64,000 bases of DNA from Octopus sinensis (GCF_006345805.1 NW_021832381.1:62001-126000); one strand, 5' to 3'. Counted from the first letter of the stretch, positions 2,011 through 64,000 are shown. Notes: a model not told the origin generated them from the letters alone. Numbers and translations: made by a program.

Positions 2011-4150
2011 TTAATATTTCCGAACAAATGGAGGTAAAGTGGGACAATCCTCATACAAGGTATGATCAATAACAGGACGATACCGTAATGATATCTAAAA
2101 TACACAATATAAAACCCACCTCTCCACTATTCTGATTGTAATATGAAAGAGTATGCTTCCTCCAATGATCCTTAAATTCCCTTCGAGATTGGCCTTCAGA
2201 ATCAATAGAATAATCAATTTCATCAATTCTAGTCTAAAGAACTATGATTTAGGTTATTTCTGACAGGAAAGTCTTCTCTAGAATGTGCTCCACGACTTTC
2301 CTTTCTTGCCTCTGCTCCTACTACAGTTTGAAGAGAGCAACACATTAAATTCTCAAGTTCCAATGTCTCAATTAAATCCGTATTCCAAATCAAAGACTTG
2401 TCGACGACCTAAAAATCTCAATTATAAAATAACTCGGATATCATTTTTTAGTTCATCGTGGATAGCCTTCAATTTTGTAATTCCTCCCTGAAGTGTAGGT
2501 CCATCACGAAAAACGGCCGCATGCTCTTGATTTGCCTTTTGCATTTTCAGACGAAGTGTGGCAGCACTACTCGACCCATTAGCATTCAAAAGGTTATCCA
2601 CGTGTTCTATTGAACTTCTTCCTGCATCCTATTAGTAAGAGAAATTAATCGACATCGGGCAAGTTCGAAAAGTTTGAATTAGGTTCCGTGTTTTCTGCTA
2701 TTGTATTTGCACAAGCTCGCCCAAAAACAACTAAATCAAGCAAGGAATTGGCCCCAAGACGGTTGGCTCCGTGAACATTGGCACACGCCCCTTCACCGCA
2801 GGCATAAAGTCCCGGAATAACAACGTCCTGGCCATCGACATGGTCGACGACTTGTCCTTTCCAATTGGTCGGAGTTCCTCCCATGTTGTAGTGGACAGTT
2901 GGGATCACCGGTATCGGGTCTTTGCTCACATCCACTCCAGCAAAAATCATGGCTGTCTCGGAAATGCCAGGCAAACGCTCCTCGATCATCTTTTTATCCA
3001 AATGACTCAACTGAAGATAAACATGATCTTTTTCAGGACCACAACCTCTGCCATAATAATTCTTACCTAAATAAACCTTCCCGCCATAATTTCTAGGGTT
3101 GCCGACCTAGAAACAACATCTCTGGAAGCCAAATCTTTCGCGGTGGGAGCATATTTTGGCATAAATCTTTCTCCCTCAGAGTTAACCAGGAATCCTCCCT
3201 CTCCACGAACTCCTTCAGTGATTAAACATCCAGCCCCATAAATCCCTCTTAATCACTTGAATAGTCCTCACCAGTCGGATGGAACTGAACAAACTCCATG
3301 TCTTGGTTAGGAACTCCTGCCCGAGCTGCGATTCCAAGTCCGTCGCCTGTACATGCGTGGGCTCCCGTGCAGGAAAAATATGATCTTCCATATCCCCTGG
3401 ATTCAATTACAGAGACAGAACCCAGTGGCAAGTACTGTGTTAAGGGAGTTGAATCTATGGAATGTGCCATCTTCGAGATTCATAGCAATCACTCCTCGAC
3501 ATGTCCGCCCGTCCATGAGCAAGTCAAGCGCAAAATATTCAACAAAATATTCAGTATTGTAATATAAAGACTAAATTATAACAAACAAATTGAACTCTGC
3601 CGTAAAGGGTATGGAGCATAGAATGTCCTGTTCTATCGGCCACGGCACAGCATCGATGAGCCTGTCCTCCTTTTCCGAATTTTAAACTTTGGCCTCCAAA
3701 GGCTCGCTGGTAGATTTTCCCGTTTTCGAGTCGGCTGAAGGGCATTCCGTAGTTTTCTAATTCTATGACCACTTTTGGGGCCTCTCTGGTCATGTATGAA
3801 ATCGCGTCCTGGTCACCCAGCCAGTCAGAGCCTTTTACAGTGTCGTAAAAATGCCATCTCCAATCATCCTCTTCCATGTTACTCAAAGCCGCGTTGATGC
3901 CTCCCTGGGCAGCAACCGTATGAGAACGTGTCGGAAAAAGTTTGGTAACACATGCCACTTTGTACCCTTTGCTGGCTAAACCAAAGGCTGCACGAAGCCC
4001 AGAGCCGCCAGCGCCGACAACAACTGCGTCGTATTTGTGGTCAATCACTTTGTATTGGCCAAAGGAAGCGGACAGAGAACGTCGAATGATGCCCTTTAGT
4101 GATAGTTTTAATAGCGACTAAAATTTTTAATAAATTTTACCACAAACCAT
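2011..4150 (-). CDS. SDHA: Succinate dehydrogenase flavoprotein subunit
   Basis: Motifs [21 protein letters not shown] (FAD-His), [22 protein letters not shown] and ESRGAH. Removing nine GT-AG introns of 25-31 nt gives one frame from ATG 4150 to TAA 2011. Confidence 0.97.
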
Positions 4151-12196: not shown

Positions 12197-12224
12197 CACA
12201 CCAACTTCAAATTGGCAATACGAT

Positions 12225-13585
12225 GTCCTCGACTTACATGATGAGGTCCTTAAAACCTTCCCCCCAAAAAAATTAAAAAAAAATTTTCTGCATTTTGGTT
12301 AAAATGAACAACTACAATGTCCTCGACTTACATGATGAAGTCCTTAAAACATTCCCCCCAAAAAAATTAAAAAAAAATTTTCTGCATTTTGGTTAAAATC
12401 AACAACTACAATGTCCTCGACTTACATGATGAAGTCCTTAAAACCTTCCCCCCAAAAAAAATTAAAAAAAAATTTTCTGCATTTTGGTTAAAATGAACAA
12501 CTACAATGTCCTCGACTTACATGATGAAGTCCTTAAAACCTTCCCCCCAAAAAAATTTAAAAAAATTTTCTGCATTTTGGTTAAAATGAACAACTACAAT
12601 GTCCTCGACTTACATGATGAAGTCCTTAAAACCTTCCCCCCCAAAAAAAATTAAAAAAAAATTTTCTGCATTTTGGTTAAAATGAACAACTACAATGTCC
12701 TCGACTTACATGATGAAGTCCTTAAAACCTTCCCCCCAAAAAAAATTAAAAAAAATTTTCTGCATTTTGGTTAAAATGAACAACTACAGTGTCCTCGACT
12801 TACATGATGAAGTCCTTAAAACCTTCCCCCCAAAAAAAATTAAAAAAAAAATTTCTGCATTTTGGTTAAAATGAACAACTACAATGTCCTCGACTTACAT
12901 GATGAAGTCCTTAAAACCTTCCCCCCAAAAAAAATTAAAAAAAAATTTTCTGCATTTTGGTTAAAATGAACAACTACAATGTCCTCGACTTACATGATGA
13001 AGTTTTTAAAACCTTCCCCCCCAAAAAAAATTAAAAAAAAATTTTCTGCATTTTGGTTAAAATGAACAACTACAATGTCCTCGACTTACATGATGAAGTC
13101 CTTAAAACCTCCCCCCCAAAAAAATTAAAAAAAAATTTTCTGCATTTTGGTTAAAATGAACAACTACAATGTCCTCGACTTACATGATGAAGTCCTTAAA
13201 ACCTTCCCCCCCAAAAAAAATTAAAAAAAAATTTTCTGCATTTTGGTTAAAATGAACAACTACAATGTCCTCGACTTACATGATGAAGTCCTTAAAACCT
13301 TCCCCCCCAAAAAAATTAAAAAAAAATTTTCTGCATTTTGGTTAAAATGAACAACTACAATGTCCTCGACTTACATGATGAAGTCCTTAAAACCTTCCCC
13401 CCAAAAAAATTAAAAAAAAATTTTCTGCATTTTGGTTAAAATGAACAACTACAATGTCCTCGACTTACATGATGAAGTCCTTAAAACCTTCCCCCCAAAA
13501 AATCAAAAAATTATTTTCTGCATTTTGATTAAAATGAACAACGCGAATGTCCTCGACATTCATGATGAGGTCCATTAAACCTTCA
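12225..13585 (+). repeat. About 94-bp minisatellite, 14 units plus a degenerate partial unit
   Basis: GTCCTCGAC recurs at 12225, 12319, 12413, 12508, 12601, 12697, 12791, 12886, 12981, 13077, 13171, 13267, 13362, 13456 and 13549. Unit length varies only in the C/A/T homopolymers. Confidence 0.97.
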
Positions 13586-34169: not shown

Positions 34170-36330
34170 ACTTTGCTCTAATCCGGCAGCTTAAAGAATT
34201 CATCAACTTCGACCATCATCTTATTACAGTGTTTTTCTTCCGAGCAAACACTTTTAGGTCGTCCATAAAAACAGGCACATTCTCCTCCTCTCCAATTGAT
34301 TGTCACTGATCAAATTGTATGCCTCAATTTTTTGTTTACGGATTAACTTACAAGTTACAGTCCGACCCCCAAATGGGGCACCAAGTGCCCCAAATGCGGG
34401 GGTGCCCCAAAAACAGGGTTTGTTATTTTTTAAAAATTAAACCATTAATAAACATCAAAAAACATTTTTACTAAAATATTCAGTTATTTTCTTTTTATTT
34501 GTAGAGTTTTGTCTGATATTGTTCGTCAATTTCAGCCGAAAATCAAAAAAATCTCGGAGCATACTTGGTGCAACATTAGAAATTTTTTCTTCTAAATTGT
34601 TAAGCAGATCTTTTGTTTTTGCTACGACATTTTCACTATTTTCGGTTTCTGAATATGTATCATAAACATTATTGTTCATGTCTTCGCATTCTCCATCAAT
34701 TGTTTCGTTAACAACTTGATCTAAATGTTCATCTGTTAGACAGTTTTTTGTTGCATAAGAATCACGGTTCCTGTCGATTTTCTTCCAACAATTAACAATA
34801 CTTTTAGCATCTATTTTCTCCCATCCTTTTGAAATTAGCATCATAACCTGACGCAAATTTAATTTACCAATAGAATGTGTAAAATCGTTTTCGAAATCTT
34901 GAAAACATAAAAATTCCATTAAGAAAGAGGAATAATAATCTTTAAAAATCTTGATTATTCCCATATCCAAAGGTTGTAAATAGGGCGTTGTATTTTTCGG
35001 CAAAAATAAAAATTCGATGTTCGAACATTCGGCAGTTTTATGGCATCCCGCATTGTCAAGTATTAATAATATTTTTCTGTTGTTTTTGCAAAACGATTCA
35101 TTATAAGTGTAAGCCAACTCATAAAAGTCTTTCCAGTCATCCATGCATTTTGAGAAGATGAATACAATAACCAAAATCTTGAACATCAAAATTTTTTAGA
35201 CACCGAGGTTTTTATATTTTCCAATAATCAATGGATTAAGTTTTTCCCGATTAAACTGCAGCATAGAAGAACAGTGAGTCTTTCTTTCCCTTGTTTATAA
35301 CCAAAACACGGTTCGCCTTGTTCAACAAATGATTTTTGAGGAGTTCTTTTTTAAAAAGCGCAGTTTCATCACAATTAAATATATTCTCAGGTCCATATTT
35401 TAATACTTTCTGGTCATATTTTTCAAAATAATTTTTCACATAAGATAAATCACATGAAGCTTTTTCACCACATATTGACTTGAATTGAAGTTCATGCCGC
35501 AATTTAAATCTATCAAGCCACCCATTGGAAGCTTTAAAAGAAGTAAATCCAATTTTTGAAGCTGTAACTAAGGCAATTTTTTTCAAATAGGGCCTGAAAT
35601 CGGAATTTTATCTACGCGTAGTCTTTGAAATATTTCAAAGACTTGATCATCAAATTTATCTTTATCGGCTTTAAATGTGTCATATTCCTCAGAAATAGTA
35701 TTGCCGTGTTGCAAGAAAGGTACAATATTTCGTTTTATTCTTGATATTGTTCCTTTACTTGTGTTGTACTTTTTCATTAGTTGCCTCTCAGATAAATTTT
35801 TCTTCAAAATTTCTTTAGCAATCTTCAATTTAGTTTCGTAATCCATAACCACAACAATAAAAATATAAATTGAAAATAAAACAAAAAATAATTAATTTAT
35901 TATAATTTTATTTTATTTTTAATTCCTTATAAATGATTTTATGGTGCCCCAAAAATTCCATAATTTTTTATCGATTTTTTTTTTTTCTGCCAAAATGTAC
36001 TTTTGGAATAAAGTGCCCCAAATTGCGGGGGTGCCCCAAAATCCGAGGGTGCCCCACCCCTGGGGTCTGCCCCATTTTGGGGTCGGACTGTATATAGATT
36101 TGAGATGCAAGTAATCGGCCTCAGATCATTGGTTAAGTCACAAATTCCTTTTTTTGGAATGAGAGAGGTAATTCCGGTGTAGACCAACTCATCAGGTGTA
36201 TACTTTCCATATATAATCTCCGTGACTTTCTTACAGAGGTCATCGTGGACTGCACTGAAATTTCTTAGAAAAAAATTGTATATGCCATCACATTCGCAGA
36301 CGCTCTAATTTGGCAGCTGTTAATGATTTC
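34170..36330 (-). mobile_element. R4-like RT fragment interrupted by the pogo element
   Basis: CDGIYNFF..LIPKKG..RPITCISNLY on one side, and ISDNQL and FMDDLKVF on the other side of the TA insertion. Confidence 0.7.
34358..36090 (-). mobile_element. pogo/Tigger-type Tc1-mariner transposon with frameshifted transposase
   Basis: 23-bp TIR CAGTCCGACCCC(C/A)AAATGGGGCA and TA TSD; HTH/CENP-B (KASNGWLDRFK) and DDD motifs (IFNCDETAL, LILDNAGCH, LQPLDMGII) spread over three ORFs. Confidence 0.93.
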
Positions 36331-36643: not shown

Positions 36644-36969
36644 TATCAATATTGGGTCAAAATGTGTCTCAATTCGTCACTAAATGATTTACTCGTTTTG
36701 TAATTATTAGTTGGTGGTGTGACCAACTCGAGTTCCTTTTTAAGTTTGGCAAGCTTTGCGTTCATAATTCCGATACGCTCATTTCTTTTACTGCGTCATA
36801 TGCTCATAGATGATGTCAGCCCCAGTCGAGGCATTTATACCAGCCAATATTTTTTTATTGAAAAACTGAGAGGGAATTCATCTACTTCCTCACTGGCTTT
36901 TCTTTTTAATTGATTCGTAGGTAAATCATTTAGTGACGAATTGAGACACATTTTGACCCAATATTGATA
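36644..36969. mobile_element. MITE with 49-bp perfect inverted repeats
   Basis: 36644-36692 is the exact reverse complement of 36921-36969; the outermost TA may be a TSD; no coding capacity recognised. Confidence 0.85.
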
Positions 36970-37591
36970 GACCCTTAGGTAGCGTTTCACAAAGCTCAGT
37001 CAGAAACAAAAAAAATTTGAACGTACCACAAGTATTATGTCGCGTCCCATGGTGGTTACGCATCCCATGCTGGCTACATGTCACCTGTCAATCAATCATT
37101 TTTACGAGGTCATTGGCTGTCAGATGTCATAATTAATGTGGTTTAATCATTCGTTACTCGTTTGGGCATATTTAATATTTTTAGCGTTATTATTCAATTT
37201 TCAACTCATTGGCCATCATGCGCGGAAATTGCCAGTCGATCCGCTGCGCATTTTAACTTTTTTCGTTTATTAACAAGTTATTTAAAAAAAAAATTTTCAA
37301 CATGTCCTCTTTAAAATGTATTCCCCTGTATATGTAATATGTCGCGAGCGACCGAGCACAGCGAGCGACCAATCTAGATGCGATCAATCAAAAAATATAT
37401 AAATTGACAAATACCGTTGAACTATTGAATTGTTTATTTTCTATGTAACAAACTCGTCACTAGATTAAAAGGGGGAGAGAAAAGCCAAACGAAACCAAGG
37501 AGACGGAAGAAACAAGTTTGTTTGCTGATTGGGGTCAACTCTAATGGGACACCAGATGTCCCTTCGATAAAAATAACGACCCCTTGCACCA

Positions 37592-40154
37592 CTATTTATT
37601 TAAGTGATGCAACAGTTTTTCAATGGATCGTACCGATCTCTCCAGCTCTGGGGTTAGTTTGGATTTTAAGTCCAAGCCATGTGCCAGTTTAATGGCATAT
37701 CTCCGCGTTTTCTCCAAAAGATCAATATGTTTCTTTCCTTCGCAGCTTCCTAACCATCCTTGAGATCCATAGATCAGGAAGGGTTCTATACACGCAGAGT
37801 ATACGTATAAGAACGTTTCCGGTTTCAGCTGGAATCGCATCAGAGCTTTCAATATTTGGGTAGCCTTGTTCTTTCTCTTCCTTATATACATCTTGAATGA
37901 ACCAGTTGCATCCACAACTATTCCGAGGTATTTAAGATCCTCCACGGGTTTTATCGCTCCGGTGTTAATACAAACATCAGGTTTTCTTCTCCTTTCACCA
38001 ATCCAACAAACAGTGCTTTTTTCAAAAGATAAAGACAAGCCTTTATCCTGGCACCATTTGCCAATTTTTTCGATATGACTATGGGTTCTTTTCCACGATA
38101 TTGATTTGCTCATAGAGAAATCCATAATTAAAATATCATCTGCGTAGATGACCATCTCCATGCTAGGGAGATCCACTTGAGGAATGTCGCACATCACACA
38201 GTTAAATAAAAGTGGACTGATGACAGATCCCTGCGGAACTCCTCTCTTAAGCAAAATTCTCTTCGATAATTGGTTTCCGACCCGTACAAACGATTCTCTT
38301 CCCGAGAGGAAACTCTTCATCCAAACTAGGGCTGTCTTTCCAACGTTAAAATTGTATAAAGTTCGTAATAGCCCGGCATGCCAGACGCTATCAAATGCTT
38401 TTGATATGTCTAGAAATGCAGCCGTAAGATACTCTTTTTTCCTTTGTGCTGTAGATATGGCCTCCTTTAACAGTGAAAAGCAATTTCCAGTGCCCTTGTT
38501 CCGCCGAAAACCCCATTGCTCTTTCAAGAGATACTGTTTATCTTCAATATAAGTTGATAGTCTTTTAAAGACAATTTTTTCCATGATTTTTGAGATAGAA
38601 CATATGAGACTGATTGGTCTGTAATTTGCAGGATCCGAACTCGGTTTTCCTTTCTTCGGGATCATGCGAACAATTGTCCTCTTCCATGCTTGGGGAACAT
38701 GTCCAATACTCCACGAAGAGTTAAATAACTTCCATAGTTCATATAATAAAGGCATTCCCGCCTTTTTGAAGGTAATCATCGGTATGTAGTCCCAACCAGG
38801 GGATTTATTTTTTACATTCGTGTATTGCTAATTTGATTTCTTCCATAGAAATAGCTCCACATAATGGTCCCTCCGTAAGCGATAGTAACTCCCAAATACA
38901 CGTCTCATTTTGTATAGTCTGAGAAATCATAGACAAAGGGTCCACTTCTTGAATCTTAGCTAGCTGCTCTTTTAACTTCTCAGGTACTTCCTCTCTTGGA
39001 ATCAGATTGCCATCATTGGACTTGAGTTTTATCTCTCCACCCTTTTTATCAGAACTCATCTTTGAGAAAAGTTTCCAAAAATTCGGATTTTTATGAAAGA
39101 GTTTAGAGCATTCTTTTTTCCAGCTCTCCTCTACTATATCTTTAGATAATTCCTCTGATAAGTTTTTAATCGATTTTATTCTTTGTTTGAGGAAGATAGC
39201 GTCTTGCGGGTCCCAACACCGCTTTAGTTTACTTTCCAAGTTCCTTTTTTCACGAAGTAGTTTGGATTGCTCTTCATTTATCAATCGATTTTTGTACGAG
39301 AAGAGAAACCTCTTTTTTCCATAGTCCTCCAGATAACTTCGAATAATGTTTCTCATTCTTTCATCCAAATAATTGATCTCGTCAAGATTTAGTATTTTCA
39401 ATTCTTGAGTATTTGCCAATTTCATAGACATATAAAAGTTAAAATGATTCCAATTAATGTTGCTGATATTATAACCAAGAAATACATCCTCAGTGAGAAC
39501 TGCTCCCGTTCTTAGTTTCATCGTTTGCGGAAGATGGTCACTCCCAACATCATTTTCAACATAAGGCCGGTCACACAAACCACTTAAGGCATTTGCAACA
39601 ATAAACAATCCTAATCGATCACCACCTTGCTGCTGAAAGTGGTTAAGCTCTTCAGATGTTAAAATTTGAAAATTTGAGGTTTTTTTGATCTCAAGTAAAC
39701 AATTTCCATCCTGATTTGACTTCACGCACCCATATGCAGTATGCTTCGCATTTAAGTCTCCAACAAGAATTGGATTTTCATTTCCTTCCATAAAATTTTT
39801 GACAATCGACGAATAATCTTTCAACCTTTTGAAGTATATACCTCCAACGGTTATCCATCCAATAGAAGTTTTTAAATCAATGGATGCTAATTCACGTACA
39901 TTCTGTTCAATTATTCTTGGATTCCGAATGTCAATAGACTTTTTGTAAAATATTGATGTTCCTGTGCCGGCGTTAGCACCAAAATGCCAAGGAATATCAA
40001 TCGAGCTGTATCCAGGAATAGTGATACTTCCAGACTTCTTCATTTTCGTCTCGTTAATGATAAATACATCCATCTGAACTGTGCTGATAAGAGCTATCAG
40101 CTCTGCTGCCCGCTTTCGAAGAGAGCGGGCATTAACCAGGGTAATTTTGGTCAC
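37592..40154 (-). CDS. Element A ORF2, AP endonuclease plus reverse transcriptase
   Basis: NARSL, INETK, GDLNAKH, SDHLP, YRPISL, QWGFR, DISKAFDSVWH, GVPQGSVISP and YADD. One +1 frameshift in an A-run near 38805. Confidence 0.9.
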
Positions 40155-41164
40155 GTTTGATTTATTTGGTGGCTGCTTCCCTCTTTTAGGAGAGCCACCA
40201 AACCGAGTAAAAACTTGGCATCTTTTTTAGTTCTGGTCATGTCCTTAATAGATCTTTCGAGCTCACTAATTAAGTCAGCTCGAGGTCGACCCGTCATTGA
40301 CCCAGCTCCTGAAGTCGACAAAGTCTGCACCGCCGAGTGAGATATAGTCGTTTCCTCTGTCTGTGTTCCAACTTCAACTGTTTTCCTAACTCTTGGAACG
40401 TTCCATCCCGCCCATGGCTTCAAGGGTAAATTTTTTATGTCTGTTTGGTTGATTTTAGCATTCGCCGAAGCTTCTTTTAACAGTTTCTGAACCAGAATTT
40501 TATCATTTTTCAGCTTTGAAGCTTCTTTAGCTTTCTCACAGCCCCGATAATTTGCCAAGTGGCTCGAAGAACCGCAGTTGACACATTTTTTCATGTTAGA
40601 GTCCTTGCAATCTGTTCCAGCATGTGTACCCGAACAAAATAGACATTTCTCCTGATTTTTACAGAAGCGTGCTATGTGGCCAAACCCTTGGCATCGATAG
40701 CACTGGACTTCCGGTTTTCTGTACCACTCGGCCTTTACATTCGAAAAGCCAATCTTTAGCCCCAATCGTACAAGCGATTGAGCTTCTCCATGATCAGAAG
40801 TTACCAATTTAATGATAGGGAGTCTCACTCCCCTTTTCTCAAAGCGTTCGAGAGTCATTTTTCCTTTCACTTTGCCCTTCAGGAAGTCTTCGAGTTCCTC
40901 AATTTCGATCCAAGTTGGGACATTTTTTAGAATTATTGCCACTGGCCCGAATTTCTTATTTTTGAGAGACTGGCCTCCCTCTCCAAAAGGTTTGCTTTCT
41001 TCTAATTCAATTTGAAAGTTTTCCACATCTTTTTCGACTTTGAAATTCAGTAGGAAATCTCCTGACTGTCGGCGAGAGACTCGTGCCTTCTTGATCGATT
41101 TCATGTTGCATAGCGTGTTAAAAATATTAATAGATCCCATCGAGGGGTTATTGACTTTAAGCAC
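40151..41164 (-). CDS. Element A ORF1, gag-like nucleic-acid-binding protein
   Basis: CYRCQGFGHIARFC, CLFCSGTHAGTDC and CVNCGSSSHLANYRGC; the N-terminus is truncated or frameshifted. Confidence 0.9.
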   Translation of the reverse strand: MLKVNNPSMGSINIFNTLCNMKSIKKARVSRRQSGDFLLNFKVEKDVENFQIELEESKPFGEGGQSLKNKKFGPVAIILKNVPTWIEIEELEDFLKGKVKGKMTLERFEKRGVRLPIIKLVTSDHGEAQSLVRLGLKIGFSNVKAEWYRKPEVQCYRCQGFGHIARFCKNQEKCLFCSGTHAGTDCKDSNMKKCVNCGSSSHLANYRGCEKAKEASKLKNDKILVQKLLKEASANAKINQTDIKNLPLKPWAGWNVPRVRKTVEVGTQTEETTISHSAVQTLSTSGAGSMTGRPRADLISELERSIKDMTRTKKDAKFLLGLVALLKEGSSHQINQT

Positions 41165-41229
41165 AACAGTAATGTTCCTCCAAACTTGTTTTCATATGAT
41201 AAATGCTCGTTTTCTGTCTACAAATACCG

Positions 41230-42715
41230 TTGAATGAATGAATGAAGTTTATTGTAATTAACAGAGAAAGAGAAAGTGACAGGAATTAAGGACGGTGATA
41301 GGACGAGACTGATGCCAAGGCAACTGAACTCTTCTGAGCTTGCGTCCAATTCATCTGTCGTGAGCCAGAGTTAATGGTGGCTATGTTGCTGAATTGCTCC
41401 CTTCTAGCAGGAGCTCTTGCAGCATATCCATATCCACTCCAAGTAGGGTCAGGGCTCCTACACAACAGCGGAAGCATTCCAGTTGGGAATCTCTGTTGTG
41501 TAGGTCCTGATCCGAGTGGGGACCTCTTTGTGACAAAGCTTTGTCACGGTGGGTTTTTCTCCTCTTATGAGGGACAGGCGAGCGGACCACTTCTGAGTTA
41601 TGGCACTCATTAGTGGTTGTCTTCGAGTTTGTGAGTGTGCTGGGGGCCGGCGACGTCTGAGTAGAGACATCGACTTTGGACGGACTTCGGGGAGCCGCTT
41701 TTGTCCAGACTGATTTTATCGGTTCGGCTTTTACCCAGCGTACTGGGCTTTTTGTCTGTGGGCTCTTCGCAGCCCTTGAGGCTGCTGTTGCTGCTTTGGC
41801 AGACGGACATCCACCGTAGCACGCCAAGTGCCCAATGTTCTTGCAATTAATGCAAGTTTTTGCAGCTGGGACACTCGGTTTCGGCTTGGAACTCGGGCAG
41901 TTTTGGTGCCTGTGTTCTTTACCGCAGAGGAGACAACGGAGTTTTTCTGAGCATCTGTAGGACGTATGTCCAAACTGATTGCAACGGAAGCATCTCGTTG
42001 CTGAGGGCTTGTGCCATCCGCAGCGGATATGGCTGAAGCCCGCAGTTATTCCAAAGCGGATGAGGGTGTTGGCCTCGGCTCTGGAATCCAGCGTGAGTCT
42101 GCCGATAGGCATGTCGGTTCCATTGCGAGAGAATCTTTCGAACTTGAAGTCCGATTCTAGACTTTCTCTCAAGTGGAGGTTAAGATCCTCTGTCGAGATC
42201 CAATGAGGGATTCCTTTAAAGACCAAGACTGAGGCCTTCTCAGCTATTGAGGCAAGTTTATGGCCGCCTTCGCCAAACATATTCGATTGAGTCAGCTCTG
42301 CTTTGAACGCAGCAGCATCCTCTGGCGAACTGAATTTTAGAATGAAGGTGCCGGACTTCTGTAAGGTTATCCGGGCTATGGAAGCAGTTGGAGACTTGGA
42401 TAGGAGGTTAAACCTCTTGATCTTTCCAAGTGCCGAGTTTTCGATACTCAGAGAATATGTGAGGTTTGAGCTGTTAGCCTCAGTTGTCGTCTGATAGAAT
42501 TGGGTCTCACTGTGTTTTTGAGCCACAGTAGGGTTCGGAGGGTTCGGATGTTCGGTGGGATATTCAGGTTCGCAAAAGGGCTGTGGCTTGGCCGCTGTTC
42601 GTCCTTGAACTTTGGAGCAAGCTTTGATTGATTCGAGATTTTGTTTATTCTTGACCATTTTTTCTTTATTTTCCTTTACCATGCAACTGGATTCTCACAG
42701 CAATTCTCAAATACT
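41230..42715 (-). mobile_element. Array element A': ORF1-only (gag-only) LINE derivative
   Basis: Intact 433-aa ORF1 (41381-42682) with CFRCNQFGH, CLLCGKEH and CINCKNIGH, followed directly by a 150-nt 3' end ending in AATAAA..(TTCA)n; no EN or RT. Confidence 0.9.
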
Positions 42716-42725
42716 ACAAATACCG

Positions 42726-45142
42726 TTGAATGAATGAAGAATTTTATTGTAAGAAAGAAGAAACGAGACAGAAACTTAGTGCGGAAAAATAATTTTGACG
42801 AGACGATTGCTTTGGGCATTCGAGCTCTTCCATGGTTCGTCCGCTTTGTCTGTCTATGAGCAGGGACACCTGCTATTCTCCACGATCGATGAATAGGTCA
42901 GCCACTTTAGAGCGTTTCCGAAAAGTTCGGATAGAAGCCTCGATGGTTTGCCGTAGCTCTGGAGACTTGCTCTCCGCCCAGCTTGGGACAGGCTCCCATG
43001 GATTTAGCATATAGGCTAGTTTTAGAGCGTATCTCCGTATTTTTTCGCATTTTCGCAGAATTTTCTCATATTGTTTCGAGTAGAACCAAGCTTCCATACC
43101 ATACAGTAGGCTGGGCAAGATTGTTGCATGGTATACAAATAGGAAGGTATTTGGATTCAAGTGCATGCCTCTTAGAAGTCGGAGAGCGGCGATGGCTTTC
43201 CCTTTTCTCCGTTTGAAATGCAAATGGTATCTCGAGTTTGCGTCGATTGTGAGCCCCAGGTAACGTATGCTCTCAGGGCGAGCGATTTCCACCAAAGAGC
43301 CGGGTTTGCGATCTTGCGACTTTCTTGGGTTAATTTAGAGATATGCAGATTTGTCCATGGCCAGCGAGAGTCGCTTACCAATGCACCAATTCTTTATCTC
43401 CTCAATGTAGCCGGCAAGTCGTTTCTCAGAGGCATTGGTGTCCATCGAGGTGTCCAGAACGAGAACATCGTCTGCGTAGAGGAGTAGGGATGTCCTGGGA
43501 TCGGAGGGTGTGGGGAAACTGCTCATTACCAAATTGAAAAGGATTGGGCTGAGACAGGACCCCTGCGGAACCCCCCTTCGAAGCGAAATATATCTTGAGA
43601 AGAAGCCCGACTCAGAGATATAAGAGTAACGATTTGAGAGGAAGCAGCGCATCCAGAGAAAGACTTCCGCTGTTGGCTCACAGAGTTCGATCCTTTCCAG
43701 GAGGTCTCTGTGCCAGACGCTGTCAAAAGCCTTTGAGATGTCCAGACATACAAGAGATAAAGTTTCTTTAAACTCCATTGCTCTCGAGATGGTGGACTGT
43801 ACCGTAATGAAACAGTCACCGCAGCTACGTTCAGAGCGAAAACCCCATTGCTGCGGGAGCAGCACTTTCTTCTCTTCGGCGTGGAAGTCGAGGCGCTTGG
43901 CCATAATTTTCTCCATCAGCCTTGAGATAGTTGGGATTAGGCTTATGGGACGGTAGCTGTTAGCGAGATTCACCGGTTTCGCAGGCTTTTTGATCATCCG
44001 GACCTTCGAGATTTTCCATTTTCCCGGCACATGGCCCCACTTGAGACTTGCCGTAAACAGATCCGCGAGGAACACATGTAGGTCTTCGGGTGCTTTCTTA
44101 AACAATCGCATCGGTATTTTGTCATGGCCCGGTGCGTTGCCTTTTGACGAACGGATGGCCCAGGTCACCTCTGCAATGGTGATCGGGTGATGGTCCGACG
44201 ACAGTGGGCGCGGCAGTGGCTCCGACTCCCGGTTTTGCAACGTTTCCGGATTGGCCTCCTGGATAGTGGCCAGGTGTTCTGCGAATATGTTTGGCATCTC
44301 TTGTGGCGAGGCGGGCATACCAGACTGGTTGCACAACCTCGGGGGTGAGGATTTTCCTTCGAGGTTAGCCACTTTGTGGAAACAGTCCCAGAAATTTGGG
44401 TTTCTGTAGTCCAGGTTTTGACAAGCCTTCTACCATTTCCTGGCTGCTTCCAGCTTTGTCGCGACGTGGACCTTATACCCAATTTCCGAGATCATGTTCC
44501 TAAGTCTTCCCCTGTCAGCTGGGTCCACACAGCGTTTGAGTTTATTTCTCAGCCGCTTCCTTTCGTTGAGGATGATCTTCACTTTCACGCTCGGAGTGGT
44601 CCTCCGTGCGCGGTCTGCACTTGGCAATTCTCCGTACGACGTTAGATACTGAAGCATGAATTTGCTTAACTTATCGCTTGCGGAGTCGATGTCGAGGGCT
44701 GAGTTATACCCAACAGGGCGACCGTTGTCGTGCAGGAATGCACTTATGAAGCTCCTGTAGTGTGGCCAGTTGATCTTTGAGAGATTGTAGTGAGAGGAAA
44801 TGTGTTCTTGTCTAACAATGCTAGTGTGAATTTTGATCTCCATTGGTAGGTGGTCACTTCCGATATCGTCAAGCACTGTAGGCTTTTCCATAAGGTTAGC
44901 GACAGAGTGAGAACAGATGCACAGGCACAGGTTGTCCCCGCCAAAGGGCGAGTGGTGGTTCGGGTCTTCGGATGTCCTGACGAAAACACCAAGCTTGTCA
45001 GTGACCTTCTTCAGTGTTCGACCATCTTGGTTGGTTAACCGACATCCAAACGCCGTGTGCTTCGAGTTTAAGTCTCCGATAAGAAGGCAATGAGCTATGC
45101 TTGAGAAGAATTCGTCAATCAATCTGATGCAGGGGGGGAGAT
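42726..45142 (-). mobile_element. Array element B: 5'-truncated LINE (partial EN plus RT)
   Basis: Begins at GIYLPP within EN; GDLNSKH, SDHLP, YRPISL, GVPQGS and YADD split over three ORFs; ends in AATAAA..TTCAA. Confidence 0.9.
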
Positions 45143-46702
45143 AAATACCGTTGAACGAACGAACAGATTTTATTGACTTAGCAACCGAAAGAGAAGAGTT
45201 TTATGAAAAGGTTTTATTTAAAATCGAGACACCGGAAGCCTCCTCCTTGCTTTCCTATTCACTTCTCATGCCCTTTGCAATGAGCAGAGGACTTGCCAAA
45301 TGTTTTGAGTTTGTTCGTCTAGCTCTCTGGGGAGATCCTGATCAAGCCGTAGCTTATACGCCAGTTTAATCGCAAAGCGCCTTGTTTTCTCCAGTTTGGT
45401 GATTATGCGATTTCTCTCGTCTGTAGGGTACCAACCTTCATGTCCATAGATAAGGACTGGTTCTACAGTCGCCTTATAGATGAAGAGAAAGGTGTCTGGG
45501 GAGAGATGGAAGCGTATAAGGCTTCTCAGGATCCCGGAACATTTCCTTCTTCTAGATTCCACGAACTTAAGGAACGATCCGTCAGCCCCGATCGTTACCC
45601 CAAGGTAGCGTAGGTCGTCAGTGATTCTTAGTCCCATTGTCTCCAGAATTGGTTCTCTTTCTTTCCGAGTTTTAGAAACCCACGTGATGGTGGACTTGTC
45701 TCGTGCTAAGGAGAGGGCTTTCTCCGTAGCCCAAGACTCAACCCTCGCTATATATTCCCTCAGGCTTTTCCAAGAGAGGTCCTTGGATCGCGACAGATCC
45801 GTAACCAATATGTCGTCCGCATAGATAATTAGTAGACTCTCCGGATTTACTGGTTTCGGGATGTCGGCAACGTATAAGTTGAAAAGTAGAGGGCTCAGGA
45901 CCGACCCTTGAGGCACTCCCCTCCTTAGATTGATTGTATCCGAGGTCCGGTTACCACATCTGATAAAAGACTTTCGCATGTGTAAGAAATTCTCTAGCCA
46001 TTTGACAGTCCTTTGCCCCGGATGGATACTGATGATCCTTTCCAGGAGGCCTACGTGCCAAACGCTGTCGAACGCCTTTGAAATGTCCAGACAAACAGCT
46101 GTCATCCCCATCTTGTGTGTAAGGGCCCTCGAGATTTGCGTTTCCAGTTGGGCAAAGCAGTTTCCACAAGACTTCCCACGTCGGAAACCCCATTGTTCTT
46201 TAGCCAGGTAACCTGACTCCTCCACGAGAATAGATAATCTGTTAAAGATTATACGTTCCATGATTCTTGATATGGAGCAGATGAGACTTATGGGTCGGAA
46301 ATTTTCTGCACGGTCTTTAGGTTTCCCTGCCTTTGGAATCATTCGTACCACGGTTTTCTTCCATGCATTCGGGACGTATCCAGTCTCCCAACTGGCATTG
46401 AAAAGTATCGTTATTATCTTGACTAGGCTTATCGGGGCCTCTTTGAAGACTCGGATGGGTATGTAATCAAAACCCGGTGCGTTGTCCTTGCATCTTTTAA
46501 TTGCTAGTAGGGTTTCATCAAGGGTGATTGCGTGACAAAGTCGACCAGGGGACATTTTCGCAGAGGCTATTGCCCTCTTTTTATCGTCCACTAGCTCGGC
46601 AGCTCGCTTCGCTCACCGCGACCTAGCTCCTGCGGAGGGCCTGTTTCATCAAACAACTATAAGTTTATGTAGATGTATAAAACTACCTGGTTTAATGTAA
46701 CC

Positions 46703-47134
46703 CTATTCTATCGCCTGTTGATAAACGATGTTTGTCGTCCGTCCTTCCTTGGCATATATGAATAAATTTTCTCTTCTGCCTACCCTCGAGCATCCCACAT
46801 ACAGCTGTCCATATGAAAAGCACTCACTCTCTAAAAATAACCCAACTACCTTTAATGACTGTCCCTGGGCCTTGTTTATTGTCATTGCAAAACTCATCCT
46901 CAAAGGAAATTGCAGCCTTTTAAATCTAAATGGTAATTCATCAGAAATTATCGGAATTCGTGGAATATAAACATCCTCACCTCTATACTTACCTGTTAAT
47001 ATCGTCGCCTCTATTACGTTAGCCATCAAATTTTTGATAACTAACCTCGTTCCGTTGCATAATTTAGGTGGCGCAAGATTTCGTAATAAAACCACTGGAA
47101 CGCCTATCTTTAACTTTAAAAGATGATTCGGCAT
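46703..47134 (-). pseudogene. Helitron PIF1-like helicase C-terminal remnant
   Basis: [55 protein letters not shown]; no Rep domain. Confidence 0.88.
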
Positions 47135-47974
47135 TCCAGAGGGATCTAAGGAGTTTAAAAATTCAATCCGGTTGAATTTTTAGAAAATAACAAAAAATAA
47201 AGAAAAACAAATAAAAATGAATAATTTAAAAACAAAAAATAAAAAAAACAAAAAAAAAACTTTAAAAATTTGTAAAATAGTATAAACAAAAAAAATCTCT
47301 GCCGCCACGGCAACAACCAGTCTAATTTTTTAACAGCCAATTAAGATAATGCTTAAGAGCCTTTATAGTCCGGAGATTTAGCTTAGTGACCTTGATTAGA
47401 CAAACCACTGGCGGAAATGGGGCAGCCGGAGATGGGGCAGGCAGAGTAGCAGCAGCCAAAAAAGCGACACACAAAAAAGATTTAATTAATTACCTTAAGC
47501 TGACCGTTTTTTCTTCAGCTTCGTTTTTCCTCCTTCGGTTATCTATTTAAAAAATTATTTTTGAATAATAAAAAAGTTTAGGAAAAGAGGCATACCGAAA
47601 ACAAATTCTATCTTTACGAAAAACTTAAGTAAATAGTTAATATTTTTACGCAAATTCTTCTGATTGCGCTGTCAATTGGTGGTAAATTGTGTTAATGATT
47701 GTGCTAATGTGGTTTTAACTATCAAAGTGTTTTTCAAAATCTGTTAATTGCACACTCTATTCAAGGTCGTGCAATCTGTAATTGCACATTCTGTCAAAGT
47801 CAAATATGATAATAGCTATAATTTTGATTCATGGTCGATAATGATATATGCATTTAATTTTAAAGAGAAAATCATAGGATGAATTAAATTTCTTTATCGC
47901 GAATAATTGGGAGTTCATCATTGTTAATATTCTCGCTGTCGTTTTCATCAAGGATATTCTTAATACGTGAGATT

Positions 47975-48870
47975 TTTGCCTCGAAGGTTTTAATGGACCT
48001 CATCATGAATGTCGAGGACATTAACGTTATTCATTTTAATCAAATGCAGAAAATAATTTTTTGATTTTTTGGCGGGAAGGTTTTAAGGACCTCATCATGT
48101 AAGTCGAGGACATCGTAGTTGTTCATTTTAACCAAAATGCAGAAAATTTTTTTAATTTTTTTTGGGGGAAGGCTTTAAGGACCTTATCATGTAAGTCGAG
48201 GACATCGTAGTTGTTCATTTTAACCAAAATGCAGAAAACTTTTTTTTTAATTTTTTTTGGGGGGAAGGTTTTAAGGACTTCATCATGTAAGTCGAGGACA
48301 TTGTAGTTGTTCATTTTAACCAATATGCAAAAAAATTTTTTTTAATTTTTTTTGGGGGGGAGGTTTTAAGGACTTCATCATGTAAGTCGAGGACATTGTA
48401 GTTGTTCATTTTAACCAAAATGCAGAAAATTTTTTTTAATTTTTTTGGGGGGGAAGGTTTTAAGGACCTCATCATGTAAGTCGAGGACATCGTAGTTATT
48501 CATTTTAACCAAAATGCAGAAAATTTTTTTTAATTTTTTTTGGGGGGGAAGGTTTTAAGGACCTCATCATGTAAGTCGAGGACATCGTAGTTGTTCATTT
48601 TAACCAAAATGCAGAAAATTTTTTTTAATTTTTTTGGGGGGGAAGGTTTTAAGGACCTCATCATGTAAGTCGAGGACATCGTAGTTGTTCATTTTAACCA
48701 AAATGCAGAAAATTTTTTTTTTAATTTTTTTTGGGGGGGAAGGTTTTAAGGACCTCATCATGTAAGTCGAGGACATCGTAGTTGTTCATTTTGACCAAAA
48801 CGCAGAAAAATTTTTTTTAATTTTTTTGGGGGGGAAGGTTTTAAGGACCTCATCATGTAAGTCGAGGACA
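47975..48870 (-). repeat. About 94-bp minisatellite, 9 units plus a degenerate unit
   Basis: GTCGAGGAC at 48011 (degenerate), 48103, 48195, 48291, 48386, 48480, 48575, 48669, 48766 and 48861. Confidence 0.95.
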
Positions 48871-49474
48871 TCGTATTGCCAATTTGAAGTTGGTGTGCAC
48901 ACACAGACAGACAGACAGACACACAGACAGACAGACAGACACACACCATACCATTTTATTATTAAGATTATATCTGTCGGGACAAAACAGCTCGGGTCGA
49001 CATCTTGAATTTTCGCCAGTTGTTGACGTAAAGCGTCAGGTACATCGTCTCGGTTGATGGCATAGCCATTTTCTGTGGTTAAATTGATTTCATCTCCTTT
49101 GCATTCCGTTTCCTTTAGGCGATATGCCTTCCAGAAACTTGGGTGTCTTCGATTAAGCTTAAAACATTCCAATCTCCAAGCTGAGTCAATGTTTTCTTTA
49201 GACCTTTTGTCGATCCTCTTTTTAAGAGAGGAAATCATTGCTCGTAGGCGTGTGCAGTCTGTTGGGTCAAAACATCTGCGTAGCCTCTTCTGGTATCTTG
49301 CCTTTTCTTTCAGGAGACTCACTACTGTGTCGTCGAGTTCATGAGTCCCTCCACCAGAGTGTTTAATGAACTTTTTCCTGGAGAACTTCTCCAAAGAAGT
49401 GTTGATAAGATTCCTAACGAGCTAGTCCAGACTTTCAATTTGTTTTGTCTCGTGTGGGACGCGACATATTAATA

Positions 49475-60240: not shown

Positions 60241-60850
60241 AATTGCATAATATATACCGCAATTCATTACATAATATCAAGTACTCCCATATCCGAACAT
60301 TTAGAAACCTCCCCAAAATGCATAATATATACCGCAATTCATTACATAATCTTAAGTACTCCCATATCCTAACATCTATAGACCTTTCCAAATTTCATAA
60401 TATATTAGGCTAATTCATTAAATAATCTCAAGTACTACCATATCCTGACATCTAGAGACCTGTCCAAATTGCATAATATATTACTGAATTCATTTCATAA
60501 TCTCAAGTACACTATATCAAAATAGTTATAAACCTCCCCAAATTGCATAATATTTTAGGCAATTAATTAAATAATCTCTAGTACCCCGAAATCCTGACTT
60601 CTAGAGACCTGTCCAAATTGCATAATATATTACTCAATTAATTTCATAATCTCGAGTACACCATATCCAAAAATTTAAAAATTTTCCCAAATTGCATAGT
60701 ATTTTAGGAAATTAATTAAATAATCTCTAGTACACCGATATCCTGACATCTAGGAACCTCCCAAAATTGCATAACATATTACTCAATTCATTTCATAATC
60801 TCAAGTACACCATATCAAAAAATTTATAAACCTCCCCAAATTGCATAATA
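60241..60850 (+). repeat. 75-bp tandem repeat (8 units) with about 150-bp dimeric higher-order structure
   Basis: AATTGCATAA-like anchors at 60241, 60316, 60391, 60467, 60541, 60616, 60690, 60765 and 60839; the later units alternate between two types. Confidence 0.9.
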
Positions 60851-60859
60851 TAGGTAACC

Positions 60860-63800
60860 CGAACCTATTCAGGTAACCCGTGAGGACGGCTGGCGTACCG
60901 TGGGGAAACCCAAACGTGTCGCTTGTCGTCCAATTTCTAACAACTTAGGTTCTAGCAATTCGTCTTCGGAGATGGATCCGCCTCCGAAGAAGACCGCTCG
61001 CGCCGGGGGTAGAATTACTTTCGGCGTGGTAGCACGACTAGAGGTCTTTCCCACTTGTGGAAAGGCCTCAGTCGTTAAAATCTTAGGGATTTTGGACTCG
61101 ATACAGCCGTCTAAGCGGTATCGAGTCCTGAAGAGGGAGCCCACCCAATTCCTGCTTGGGTGGGAGAAGTCTGAGGACTTTTCCAGTTTCGAAAGGGAGC
61201 TGGAAAAGTCCATCCCGTTCGGGCCTGGCATGCATCGGCTTGTCAGGTTCGAACGCAAGGTAGGGCAGGTAAGAGTCCTCCTCCTTGGGGTCCCCGGGAC
61301 TTCGAGGATAACGACCTTTTAGAACACCTGCAGCTGGAGTACCCCAGTGCCTCTGCCATTGCACGCTTCAAGCAAGGTTACCGGCCTCTTGAAGTGGTGG
61401 AGGTCACGCTGGGATCTCCTGCTGAAGCCGAGCGCCTCATACTGCTGGGTACGAGGGTTGGCTACGTCAGGCTTCGTGCTGTCCGGACCCGCCCGAAAGC
61501 CACCCAATGCTTTCGGTGTCAGGGTTTCGGGCACATAAGCACAGGGTTTCAGGACACGAGGTGTCCTGAGAAGGCGAAGTGCCTGAACCTGCGGTGGGGA
61601 GCATGGTCGCAAGGCATGCCCCTCGCCACCTACGAAGAGGTACTGTGTCAACTGTGGTAAGTTAGGACACAGTGCCAACTTCAAAGGTTGCCCCAAGTTC
61701 AAGGAGGCAACCCGAAAGGTAGGTGCGGGTGTAATCTCGAAGGTAAGTCGCGCGGCTAGCGTCGCAGCCCCTGGGGCACAACAACCTGGTGTAGCAAATA
61801 TGCTACATTGCAACATGGCTGAGGCCAAGAAGATCCTTGGCAAGGAACCGATATGATGCTCAACATTATATCGATGAACGCGCGCTCCTTGTCCGGTAAA
61901 GGAGACGCCGTTCAGAGGATGTTGGCCACCACGAGTGCGGACATTCTGGTGGTCAACGAAACGAAGGTAAAGGGGGGTCCGTACGTAGTTGATGGCTACA
62001 ACTGTTGTCACATACCTTGGAAACAGGGGTCAATATGTGGCACGGGAACTAGCCTCTTCTACAAGCCGTACCTCGCCTTGCAAAGTTCAGGTATATGTTC
62101 TTGTAGCCTATGCGAATTCCTTCAAGTAAGGATTCGTATAGGTAACTTTACATTTTACCTAGAGGCGATGTATTCGAAAAACTTTACGGCGTGTTCCTGG
62201 CACGTACGGGAGTTCTTTGGAAAGCATCCGAAGGCGATGGTTGTTGGAGACCTGAATGCCAAGCACATAGAGCTTGGTTACAGGGTAACCAATGCGCATG
62301 GTTTGGCTCTGAAAACTCTGGTTGAAGACCTCGGGCTGGAAATCCGGACTTCAAGTGAGCCAAACCACATCGATTCGCGAGGCGGACGAGACTGGCTAGG
62401 GCTTGCTCTGGTCAGTCCTGGAATGCTAAATTGGGTTAGTAAAACAATTTTATTGCCCAATATTGGAAGCGACCATCTGCCTCTATTGCACGAACTCCGC
62501 GAACCAGTCCCTCAAAGGGTTCCGGGATACTTCAACCTCCGGTCGGGTTCTTGGGCCAACCTGGAGAGGTTCATGGCCAGCAGGTTGCCCTCACTTCTGG
62601 TGGGGAATACCTGTGCCAATATACGTGAGTTGGAGGCGTTAGATAATGGAATCAATGCTGCCCTGACTGATTATATGCGAGATAATTTCAAACAGAACTC
62701 AGTGCAGGGTCAGTCACATTCCACGCTCCCATACCGGGTCTTAAATAAAATTAAGTTTAAGCGCCGGCTATCCAGACTACGGGACGAATGCGTTTACGAG
62801 GAAAACCGTGTTTGGTTTCGAGGCTGGATTAGCCGGCTTCAGAGGGAGATCAGAAGAGAAATCCGCGAACTCGAAAGTTCACGGTGGGAGCGAGCCTGCA
62901 GACGCGTAGACGCCCGCTTCCCGGACTTCTGGAAACAGTTGAAGAGCTTGTCGGGGAGAGGGGTAGCAAATTCAGTGCGCCTTAAACGCTCTGATGAAAC
63001 CCTTGTTTCGGACCCGGTTGAGGTGGCTGAAATATTTTCGACCCACCTCGATAACATCTCTGGAACTGAAGGAAGCCAGTTCGTGGAGACATCGTCCTTT
63101 GATACTGTCCAGCAGATGTTGTCGTGGGACAAGCGCTGCCAGCTGGGCATATCAAGGAACGATGCAAGCGACATTTCCGAAGCGGAGATTCTGGCAGCGA
63201 TCTCCCGAAGTAAGAACACTGCGGCGGGTCTGGACCGGATCCCTATGGCTATCTTTAAGAAGGCCCTGCCGTTGTTGATCACGGCTTTACAGGTCTTGTT
63301 TAGCGGGAGCTTGCGACTTGGGATGATCCCCTCTAGATGGAAAGTGGCTGAGGTAATCCTTATCGGAAAACCCAGGATGCCTCATGATGTCCCTGGGGGA
63401 TAAAGACTTATTTCCTTGCTTCCCGCTGTATCTAAAATTTTAGAAAGGATCATGCAACGAAGGCTCCTGGAGGAGCTGACGATGGTTGATGCCCTTCCTG
63501 AGTTCCAATGGGGCTTCAGGGAGGGTCGTTCGTGTGGAGACTGCTTATGGAAGGTGTCTTCTGAGATGAAGTGCGCCCTCCAGAAGAAGGAATGTGGTAT
63601 GCTAGTTAGTCTTGACATTGAAAAGGCCTTCGACTCGGTGTGGCACGACGGCCTCTGGAACTCCCTCACCACGTGTGGGGTTTCTCCGTGTCTAAGACGC
63701 TGGCTATCGGGGTTCCTTGAATCTCGCGGACAGGTCGTGCGGCATCAGGGGGTCTTTTCTAAAGTCAGAACAGTCCTTCGCGGGGTCCCTCAGGGCTCTG

Positions 63801-64000
63801 TGCTGAGTCCCACGCTTTTTAATGTCTTTATGGCATCTGCGCCCATGCCAGTCAATGCTCGTACTGAAATGGTAATTTATGCAGACGACATCATCCTCTG
63901 GGATCACTCGATGAAACCTGAGTGTGCGTGTCGTAGGCTACAGGTTGCTGTGGATGGACTTGTAAACTGGTGTGGGAGTAGGGGTCTAAAGATGCGTGCG
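60860..64000 (+). mobile_element. APE-type LINE related to the array family (ORF1 frameshifted; ORF2 61853 to window end)
   Basis: ORF1 CFRCQGFGH and CVNCGKLGH; ORF2 NARSL, VNETK, GDLNAKH, SDHLP, one in-frame TAA at about 63401, then DIEKAFDSVWH, GVPQGS and YADD. Confidence 0.9.

Follow-up and report, generated by a model that had tools for sequence, protein, structure and literature searches.

Diverged LINEs arrayed head to tail within the inverted terminus of a putative MITE in Octopus sinensis

What sequence is recognised when several long interspersed nuclear elements (LINEs) come to lie one behind the other at a single site? The question is raised by a stretch of 64,000 nucleotides from the Octopus sinensis genome (GCF_006345805.1, NW_021832381.1:62001-126000; hereafter the window, in whose coordinates all positions are given), a eukaryotic sequence of ~35% G+C that is rich in transposable elements. 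Four LINEs are found there in tandem, just inside one end of a small element, here called the host element, which resembles a miniature inverted-repeat transposable element (MITE). A sequence-only reading of the window had proposed that these LINEs target the terminal inverted repeat (TIR) of a MITE. Our analysis favours a more restricted statement, namely that the LINE target is the inner half of a MITE inverted repeat, filled by sequential site-specific insertion, and we assign this reading as a whole a probability of about 0.6.

The interval 37417-49454 consists of four head-to-tail LINEs on the minus strand (A-D) of the type that combines an apurinic/apyrimidinic endonuclease (APE) with a reverse transcriptase (RT). 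The Pfam domains Exo_endo_phos_2/Exo_endo_phos, RVT_1 and zf-CCHC were detected in copies A, B and D. In the following list, which also gives the 10-nt sequence after each copy, ORF denotes an open reading frame, UTR an untranslated region and aa amino acids.

45151-49454, minus strand: LINE A, 5'-truncated in the APE-RT linker, with one in-frame TAG (49424-49422) and a (GTTC)n-like tail
45141-45150, minus strand: CGGTATTTAT, spacer separating LINEs A and B, with one G>A
42726-45140, minus strand: LINE B, 5' end truncated inside the APE domain; APE remnant and RT with at least three frame disruptions; (TTCA)n tail
42716-42725, minus strand: CGGTATTTGT, spacer between LINE B and LINE C
41230-42715, minus strand: LINE C, with a 33-nt 5' UTR, an intact ORF1 (42682-41381, 433 aa), a 3' UTR of ~150 nt and a (TTCA)n tail
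41220-41229, minus strand: CGGTATTTGT, spacer between LINE C and LINE D
37417-41219, minus strand: LINE D, full length (3.8 kb), with the tail AATAAA..TTCAATAGTTCAA
37407-37416, minus strand: CGGTATTTGT, which flanks LINE D on its 3' side and forms the inner portion of the right inverted repeat; either the target or one of its duplicated copies

In LINE D, ORF1 (41164-40151) encodes a region resembling an RNA recognition motif (RRM) together with three CCHC knuckles, and ORF2 encodes APE (40154-38805) and RT (38779-37592) with a single frameshift near 38805-38812. ORF2 comprises ~850 aa, and its C-terminus is devoid of a Cys/His motif. LINE A retains an intact RT ORF of 441 aa (46591-45266). 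LINE C, which has lost essentially all of ORF2, is an ORF1-only derivative that we liken to the HAL1 derivatives of L1; its 3' UTR is similar to that of LINE B.

On the plus strand, the 10-mer that follows each LINE reads ACAAATACCG at 37407, 41220 and 42716, and ATAAATACCG at 45141. On the sense strand, the 3' ends of all four copies take the form ..AATAAA..TTC(A/G)TTC(A/G)TTCAA, followed directly by CGGTATTT(G/A)T. The 3' UTRs cannot be aligned upstream; they converge at the tail and the 10-mer, and diverge again beyond the 10-mer. Pairwise identity among the copies amounts to 44-49% in RT, 32-35% in APE and 31% in ORF1. With RT identity this low, the array must represent at least three long-separated families that inserted independently at the same nucleotide, and independent insertions by diverged families at one nucleotide point to sequence-specific integration. 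Copies so divergent cannot have arisen from one insert by duplication or unequal crossing-over. We therefore regard a site-specific LINE array as highly probable.

Does the 10-mer belong to the LINEs or to their target? It is not the LINE 5' end, because the 5'-truncated LINE B is also preceded by it. To judge from a relative, it is probably not the LINE 3' end either: a metagenomic LINE that is 34% identical ends in AATAAA..(TTAC)5 placed directly against unrelated DNA, which argues for the tetranucleotide tail as the normal LINE end in the group and for CGGTATTTGT as the target. Three of the four insertions entered the site with a LINE tail upstream or, if the order was the other one, with a LINE 5' end downstream. 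The recognised sequence would therefore be essentially CGGTATTTGT plus one flank, and not the whole inverted repeat.

The array is enclosed by an inverted repeat whose components are listed here with those of the host element.

37036-37037, unstranded: TA, left flank, putative target-site duplication of the host element; read directly, matches 49467-49468
37038-37057, plus strand: left TIR, exact over 12 nt (37038-37049); 17 of 20 positions match the right end after rejoining
37041-37077, plus strand: 18-nt subterminal direct repeat, 2.1 copies (CGCGTCCCATGGTGGTTA / CGCATCCCATGCTGGCTA; Tandem Repeats Finder, 84% matches)
37036-37416, unstranded: host element body, 381 bp, non-coding, AT-rich; together with 49455-49468 a TA-flanked element of 395 bp
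49455-49466, minus strand: outer 12 nt of the right TIR, reading TGTCGCGTCCCA on this strand and immediately adjoining LINE A at its 5' end
49467-49468, unstranded: TA, right flank; read directly

Only two exact copies of TGTCGCGTCCCA exist in the window, one at 37038-37049 on the plus strand and the other at 49455-49466, where the plus strand reads TGGGACGCGACA; when up to two mismatches are allowed, the 12-mer has six matches against 1.6 expected. Both outer edges are bordered by TA, and a direct repeat longer than this is excluded (TTA versus TAT). TA is its own reverse complement, so the flanking TA could equally be part of the inverted repeat and not a duplication. Such a placement of TA, flush with the repeat on either side, is what insertion of the Tc1/mariner type typically leaves behind.

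The sequence-only reading had predicted that joining 37416 to 49455 would produce a TIR match at 17 of 20 positions with TA at both ends, and direct reading bore this out: on the minus strand the junction is TGTCGCGTCCCA^CGGTATTT, compared with TGTCGCGTCCCATGGTGGTT at the left end. After rejoining, the left terminus is TA-TGTCGCGTCCCA-TGGTGGTT and the right terminus TA-TGTCGCGTCCCA-CGGTATTT, with mismatches at positions 13 (C/T, a CpG>TpG change), 17 (A/G) and 18 (T/G); the left-end sequence of the host element includes TCCCATGGTGGTTAC. While CGGTATTT prolongs the inverted repeat at 5 of 8 positions, the next 8 nt, CAATTTAT, do so at only 2 of 8.

How often would such a terminus arise by chance? 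As a control, we made 44,969 mock placements in the same window and scored inverted repeats with one arm at most 30 nt from the right boundary and the other at most 500 nt from the left boundary. Repeats reaching 12 nt or more turned up in 0.38% of these placements, and those of 14 nt or more in 0.05%. The observed repeat spans 14 nt including TA and is GC-rich within AT-rich sequence. LINE protein homology can be proven only up to 49442, leaving the right edge of the array uncertain by at most 12 nt; these last 12 nt were assigned by means of the inverted repeat and not independently, and the 30-nt tolerance of the control covers this uncertainty. The inverted terminus inside the TA flanks is thus unlikely to be due to chance.

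Excision of 37417-49454 yields a rejoined host element of 395 bp with no ORF of 100 aa or more. By its structure (TIRs, TA flanks, small size and non-coding sequence) it is plausibly, though unproven, a non-autonomous MITE of the Tc1/mariner type. It may belong to a multicopy family, whose further TA-flanked members would end in TGTCGCGTCCCA(Y)GG and would be expected to match the pattern TATGTCGCGTCCCAYGG. The 18-nt subterminal repeat is a candidate for a second transposase-binding site. No autonomous partner was recognised in the window, where the sole DDE element, pogo-like and located at 34356-36092, has an unrelated inverted repeat (TA followed by CAGTCCGACCCCC); these termini rule it out as the partner. 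Within the host element, TAATATGTCGCG at 37335-37346 matches the flank of the right end together with the beginning of the inverted repeat, in inverted orientation relative to the right end and in direct orientation relative to the left end. This match could be due to chance (~3 such 12-mer matches are expected) or could be a relic internal terminus. The near-match CGGTATTTTT at 23149 has no LINE beside it and was set aside.

The array could have arisen as follows. A small (~395 bp), non-coding, TA-flanked element with TIRs of ~20 nt would have been invaded by sequence-specific LINEs. At a point 12 nt in from the right end, where TCCCA meets CGGTATTTGT, their APE endonuclease would nick the bottom strand, and the 3' end so released, ..ACAAATACCG-3', would serve as the primer for reverse transcription of the LINE RNA from its (TTCA)n tail. 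If the second (top) strand were then cut ~10 nt downstream, CGGTATTTGT would be duplicated, and each insertion would regenerate a usable target. Other families of the same lineage would later insert in turn, giving the head-to-tail array A, B, C, D with a 10-mer after each copy. The empty site would be an uninterrupted TCCCACGGTATTTGT, and the LINEs would be flanked by CGGTATTTGTCAATTTATA.. on the 3' side and by ..TGTCGCGTCCCA(CGGTATTTGT) on the 5' side. LINE A would be the oldest and LINE D the youngest copy, each newcomer entering the 10-mer that adjoins the interior of the element. An order of A, B, then C and D is suggested by the degree of decay: A has a Helitron nested in it and a mutation in its spacer, B is the most heavily disrupted copy, and little damage is seen in C and D. 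Entry into the interior-adjoining copy would imply recognition through the 10-mer and the sequence downstream of it, and not through the outer 12 nt of the TIR.

Three other explanations deserve consideration. If CGGTATTTGT or TTCAACGGTATTTGT were a conserved LINE 3' terminus, the LINEs would build self-targeting arrays, the first copy having landed 12 nt inside an inverted repeat by accident. The block TTCAACGGTATTT is indeed invariant in four of four copies whose 3' UTRs are otherwise unalignable, the missing 10-mer upstream of LINE A fits a terminus as well, and one locus cannot separate target from terminus. We nevertheless hold this explanation to be unlikely. Related LINEs end in the tetranucleotide-repeat tail itself, CGGTATTT extends the inverted repeat better than the sequence at the alternative junction (5/8 versus 2/8), and even then the array would begin precisely where the 12-nt repeat ends on its inner side, a position that again calls for targeting. 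Nor is it probable that the LINEs, while sequence-specific, recognise a multicopy sequence of another kind (a satellite unit, the promoter of a gene family or a small RNA gene missing from the catalogues) that happens to contain a short inverted repeat and is not a mobile MITE. The sharing of one site by three families with less than 50% RT identity does suggest a long-lived, conserved target, as is typical for R1, R2 and Utopia (PMC4640811), and a MITE family is not demonstrated in the window. Searches for RNA genes, however, returned no Rfam family at the gathering score in the window, none at E<=1 in 36900-37480, and no tRNA, so we rejected a multicopy RNA gene as the target. Tandem repetition of the host unit was likewise not found around the site, and the exact placement of TA at both repeat edges favours a Tc1/mariner-type element.

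Finally, the inverted repeat could be a coincidence, with one LINE inserted at a site of no special kind and the target-site duplication it left becoming a local hotspot for further LINEs. Inverted matches of 12 nt are common in 64 kb overall, and the right boundary of the array was set by the repeat itself. Even with the 30-nt tolerance, however, the mock placements produced comparable repeats at the low rates given above. Most of the background consists of low-complexity matches, whereas the repeat seen here is GC-rich; TA follows both of its arms, and the match continues at 5 of 8 positions after rejoining. We therefore judge a coincidence to be very improbable.

Several observations weigh against insertion into a MITE terminus. 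The array evidence comes from a single locus; in the 64 kb, neither the host element nor its terminus has another copy, and an uninterrupted paralogous empty site was likewise not found. The inverted repeat is short (12 nt exact, then 5/8), and the 18-nt subterminal repeat of the left end has no counterpart at the right end. LINE A lacks the upstream 10-mer, showing that the 10-nt duplication is not universal; either this LINE integrated without a duplication, or the duplication was lost at its truncated 5' junction. Three deeply diverged families imply that the target is old and stable, a property expected of RNA genes or satellites more often than of a MITE. When a LINE RT was searched against a database of 5.8 billion proteins, the best match had 39% identity, and the proteins encoded in the window itself were not among the entries. 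Finally, the uninterrupted junction was encountered only in cyanobacterial DNA.

That last result came from database scans for relatives and junctions. In the JGI metagenomes, the junction GTCGCGTCCCACGGTATTTG was found in seven contigs forming two independent groups, both bacterial. Three of the seven derive from a single coding region of bacteria, in which the match covers exactly 20 bases. The other four contain a cyanobacterial repeat, in which the 23-nt TGTCGCGTCCCACGGTATTTGTC is the first of several same-orientation copies of a ~21-nt motif. The repeat core TCCCACGnTATTTG recurs in several same-orientation copies per ~240 bp (cyanobacterial contigs L003, L006, L007, L008, L010 and L011). 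A GTDB scan with the 23-mer TGTCGCGTCCCACGGTATTTGTC retrieved two cyanobacterial metagenome-assembled genomes, Kovacikia sp. and Gloeobacterales, where it lies next to toxin-antitoxin-like genes. At the cyanobacterial loci similarity to the window stops at 23 nt, with neither a LINE nor TA flanks. By our own estimate, ~1 chance match of a 20-mer is expected in the metagenome collection, and for this reason and for the lack of similarity beyond 23 nt we rejected these matches as evidence for a MITE. The 23-mer is expected 0.017 times in the 596-Gb genome set; the 23-nt match is probably a coincidence, albeit an unexplained one. The sequence-only reading had looked to uninterrupted TCCCACGGTATTT junctions elsewhere for evidence of a MITE family, and these scans neither confirm nor refute that expectation. 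Five contigs encoding better RT matches were inspected as well; none carries CGGTATTTGT, and one has the same type of tail. A scan of viral contigs with the RT found nothing. What stands of the original proposal is that the LINEs join a 10-mer directly inside a 12-nt inverted terminus; a MITE family is plausible for the host element, and the recognised unit would be smaller than the whole TIR.

How does the array compare with known systems? Transposons are an established target class of sequence-specific LINEs, and most reported target-specific families belong to the early-branched, Tx1 and R1 groups (PMC4640811); a family has been counted as target-specific if more than 20% of its genomic copies have the same target flank (PMC4494074). 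Tx1L of Xenopus laevis resides in Tx1D, a non-autonomous piggyBac element, and Tx1-9_AMi inserts into Harbinger elements (PMC4494074). The sequence-only reading had invoked Tx1L and Tx2L in Tx1D and Tx2D (Christensen et al. 2000, as cited in PMC1919474 and PMC4494074). The comparison is apt, since on the account given in those citations an APE-type LINE recognises ~10 bp around the nick in a non-autonomous DNA transposon and composite elements result. It differs in that Tx1D is of the piggyBac type and not TA-flanked (PMC4494074), in the LINE clade, and in that the array is known from sequence alone.

A closer precedent is offered by crocodilians, in which Tx1-Mar LINEs and SINEU-3 are found in the non-autonomous Mariner-N4_AMi, often in tandem around the target-site duplication, an arrangement attributed to sequential insertion (Kojima 2015, PMC4494074). 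There, too, related LINE families prefer one site in a non-autonomous mariner-type transposon, and tandem insertions sandwich the duplication. In contrast to the array, the Tx1-Mar LINEs belong to the Tx1 clade of the L1 group, whereas the array ORF2 is only ~850 aa long without a C-terminal zinc finger; the array site lies inside the TIR itself, and its duplication measures 10 nt as opposed to 16 in Tx1-Mar.

To which clade might the array LINEs belong? The RT matched R2 with E=6.6e-19 and human L1 ORF2p with E=1.7e-13, scores that are not a formal phylogeny. Among solved structures, the APE profile matched the TRAS1 endonuclease best (E=7.6e-7, against E=0.67 for an L1 endonuclease), a weak preference, and R1Bm endonuclease was absent from its matches at E<=10. 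Few RT homologues were named, these being a 'jockey-like' rotifer entry and unnamed bird RT proteins, the latter presumably of the CR1 type. With a short ORF2 that lacks the C-terminal zinc finger, an RT no closer to L1 than to R2, a TRAS1-like APE and a tetranucleotide tail, the array LINEs do not look like members of the Tx1 clade.

With the R1 clade (R1, TRAS1, SART1) the array shares an ORF1 with three CCHC knuckles, a sequence-specific APE nearest to that of TRAS1, exact junctions, short duplications and the presence of several diverged lineages on one target, as judged by such features and not by an RT phylogeny. It differs in the absence of the C-terminal zinc finger from ORF2, a zinc-finger-like domain being the typical end of R1-clade ORF2 (PMC1919474), and in its target, which in the R1 clade is ribosomal DNA, telomeric repeats or microsatellites and not a transposon end. 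The CR1/L2/Rex1 branch of the Jockey superfamily is matched, again in features and not by an RTclass1-type phylogeny, by the short tandem-repeat 3' tails after AATAAA, (TTCA)n or (GTTC)n in the array and (TTAC)5 in the 34%-identical relative. Type-I ORF1 proteins (RRM plus three CCHC) occur in some CR1 and L2 subgroups and also in the R1 clade (PMC4120745). Strict site specificity would be unusual in the Jockey superfamily, most of the target-specific families reported lying in the early-branched, Tx1 and R1 groups (PMC4640811). We offer only tentatively the possibility that the array represents an old APE-type LINE lineage outside Tx1 and R1, CR1/Jockey-like with tetranucleotide tails, with strict specificity for a 10-15-nt site in the TIR of a mariner-type MITE, in which at least three families with less than 50% RT identity and an ORF1-only derivative coexist.

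LINE A is itself interrupted by another element:

46591-48967, minus strand: nested Helitron-like insertion of 2377 bp in LINE A, 5'-TC...CTAG-3', between A48968 and T46590

Removal of this Helitron restores the ORF2 frame of LINE A (..VPTDI joined to MDDKKRA..). Within the insertion are the C-terminal remnant of a PIF1 helicase (Pif1_2B_dom, E=1.3e-12), a T-rich stretch, (ACAG)n and a satellite whose 95-bp unit is present in 9.4 copies; the insertion has no target duplication, and its 3' hairpin is weak. A second array of the 94/95-bp satellite is present at 12219-13584, with 14.4 copies, 96% matches and the opposite orientation to that in the Helitron, which suggests a Helitron-borne satellite family.

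Elsewhere in the window, a TA-flanked element of 326 bp (36644-36969), 67 bp left of the host element, has a perfect 49-nt inverted repeat (TA followed by TCAATATTGGGTCAAAATGTG...) and looks like a young MITE of a different family. The pogo/Tigger-like element at 34356-36092 contains a DDE_1 remnant (34455-35189, minus strand) and a 25-nt inverted repeat that is 96% complementary (TA followed by CAGTCCGACCCCCAAATGGGGCA). Another LINE of the same broad group as the array copies lies within 60241-64000 on the plus strand, starting at ~60.9 kb directly after a 75/149-bp tandem repeat (60241-60852) and running off the window; it is 27% identical to the array copies in APE and ~38% in RT, and a rearranged fragment of the family lies at 1-800 on the minus strand. 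This LINE does not use the CGGTATTTGT site; we rejected it as a counter-example to specificity because its APE identity of 27% marks it as a different family. The sole clearly cellular gene recognised is represented by an SDHA exon (succinate dehydrogenase flavoprotein subunit; 3551-4048, minus strand), 87% identical to the best database fragment.

For annotation, the 12-kb block is to be read as five transposable elements nested in a sixth and not as a gene cluster. Safe-site targeting of transposons is already known, and the array appears to follow the same mode while differing in the LINE. Nature offers safe-site integration in the form of sequence-specific LINEs, whose endonucleases are being investigated as tools for programmable insertion; insertion into the MITE terminus, if correct, would provide a clean natural substrate for work on endonuclease specificity. 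Should the lineage indeed fall outside Tx1 and R1, it would represent an independent origin of specificity, with a 10-nt target in a DNA-transposon end and several diverged families coexisting. The outer 12 nt of the TIR survive, so that a transposase may still move the composite of MITE and LINEs, which would give these LINEs a second route of spread. The octopus array would then be another case of a DNA transposon acting as a multicopy, possibly mobile, refuge for retrotransposons.

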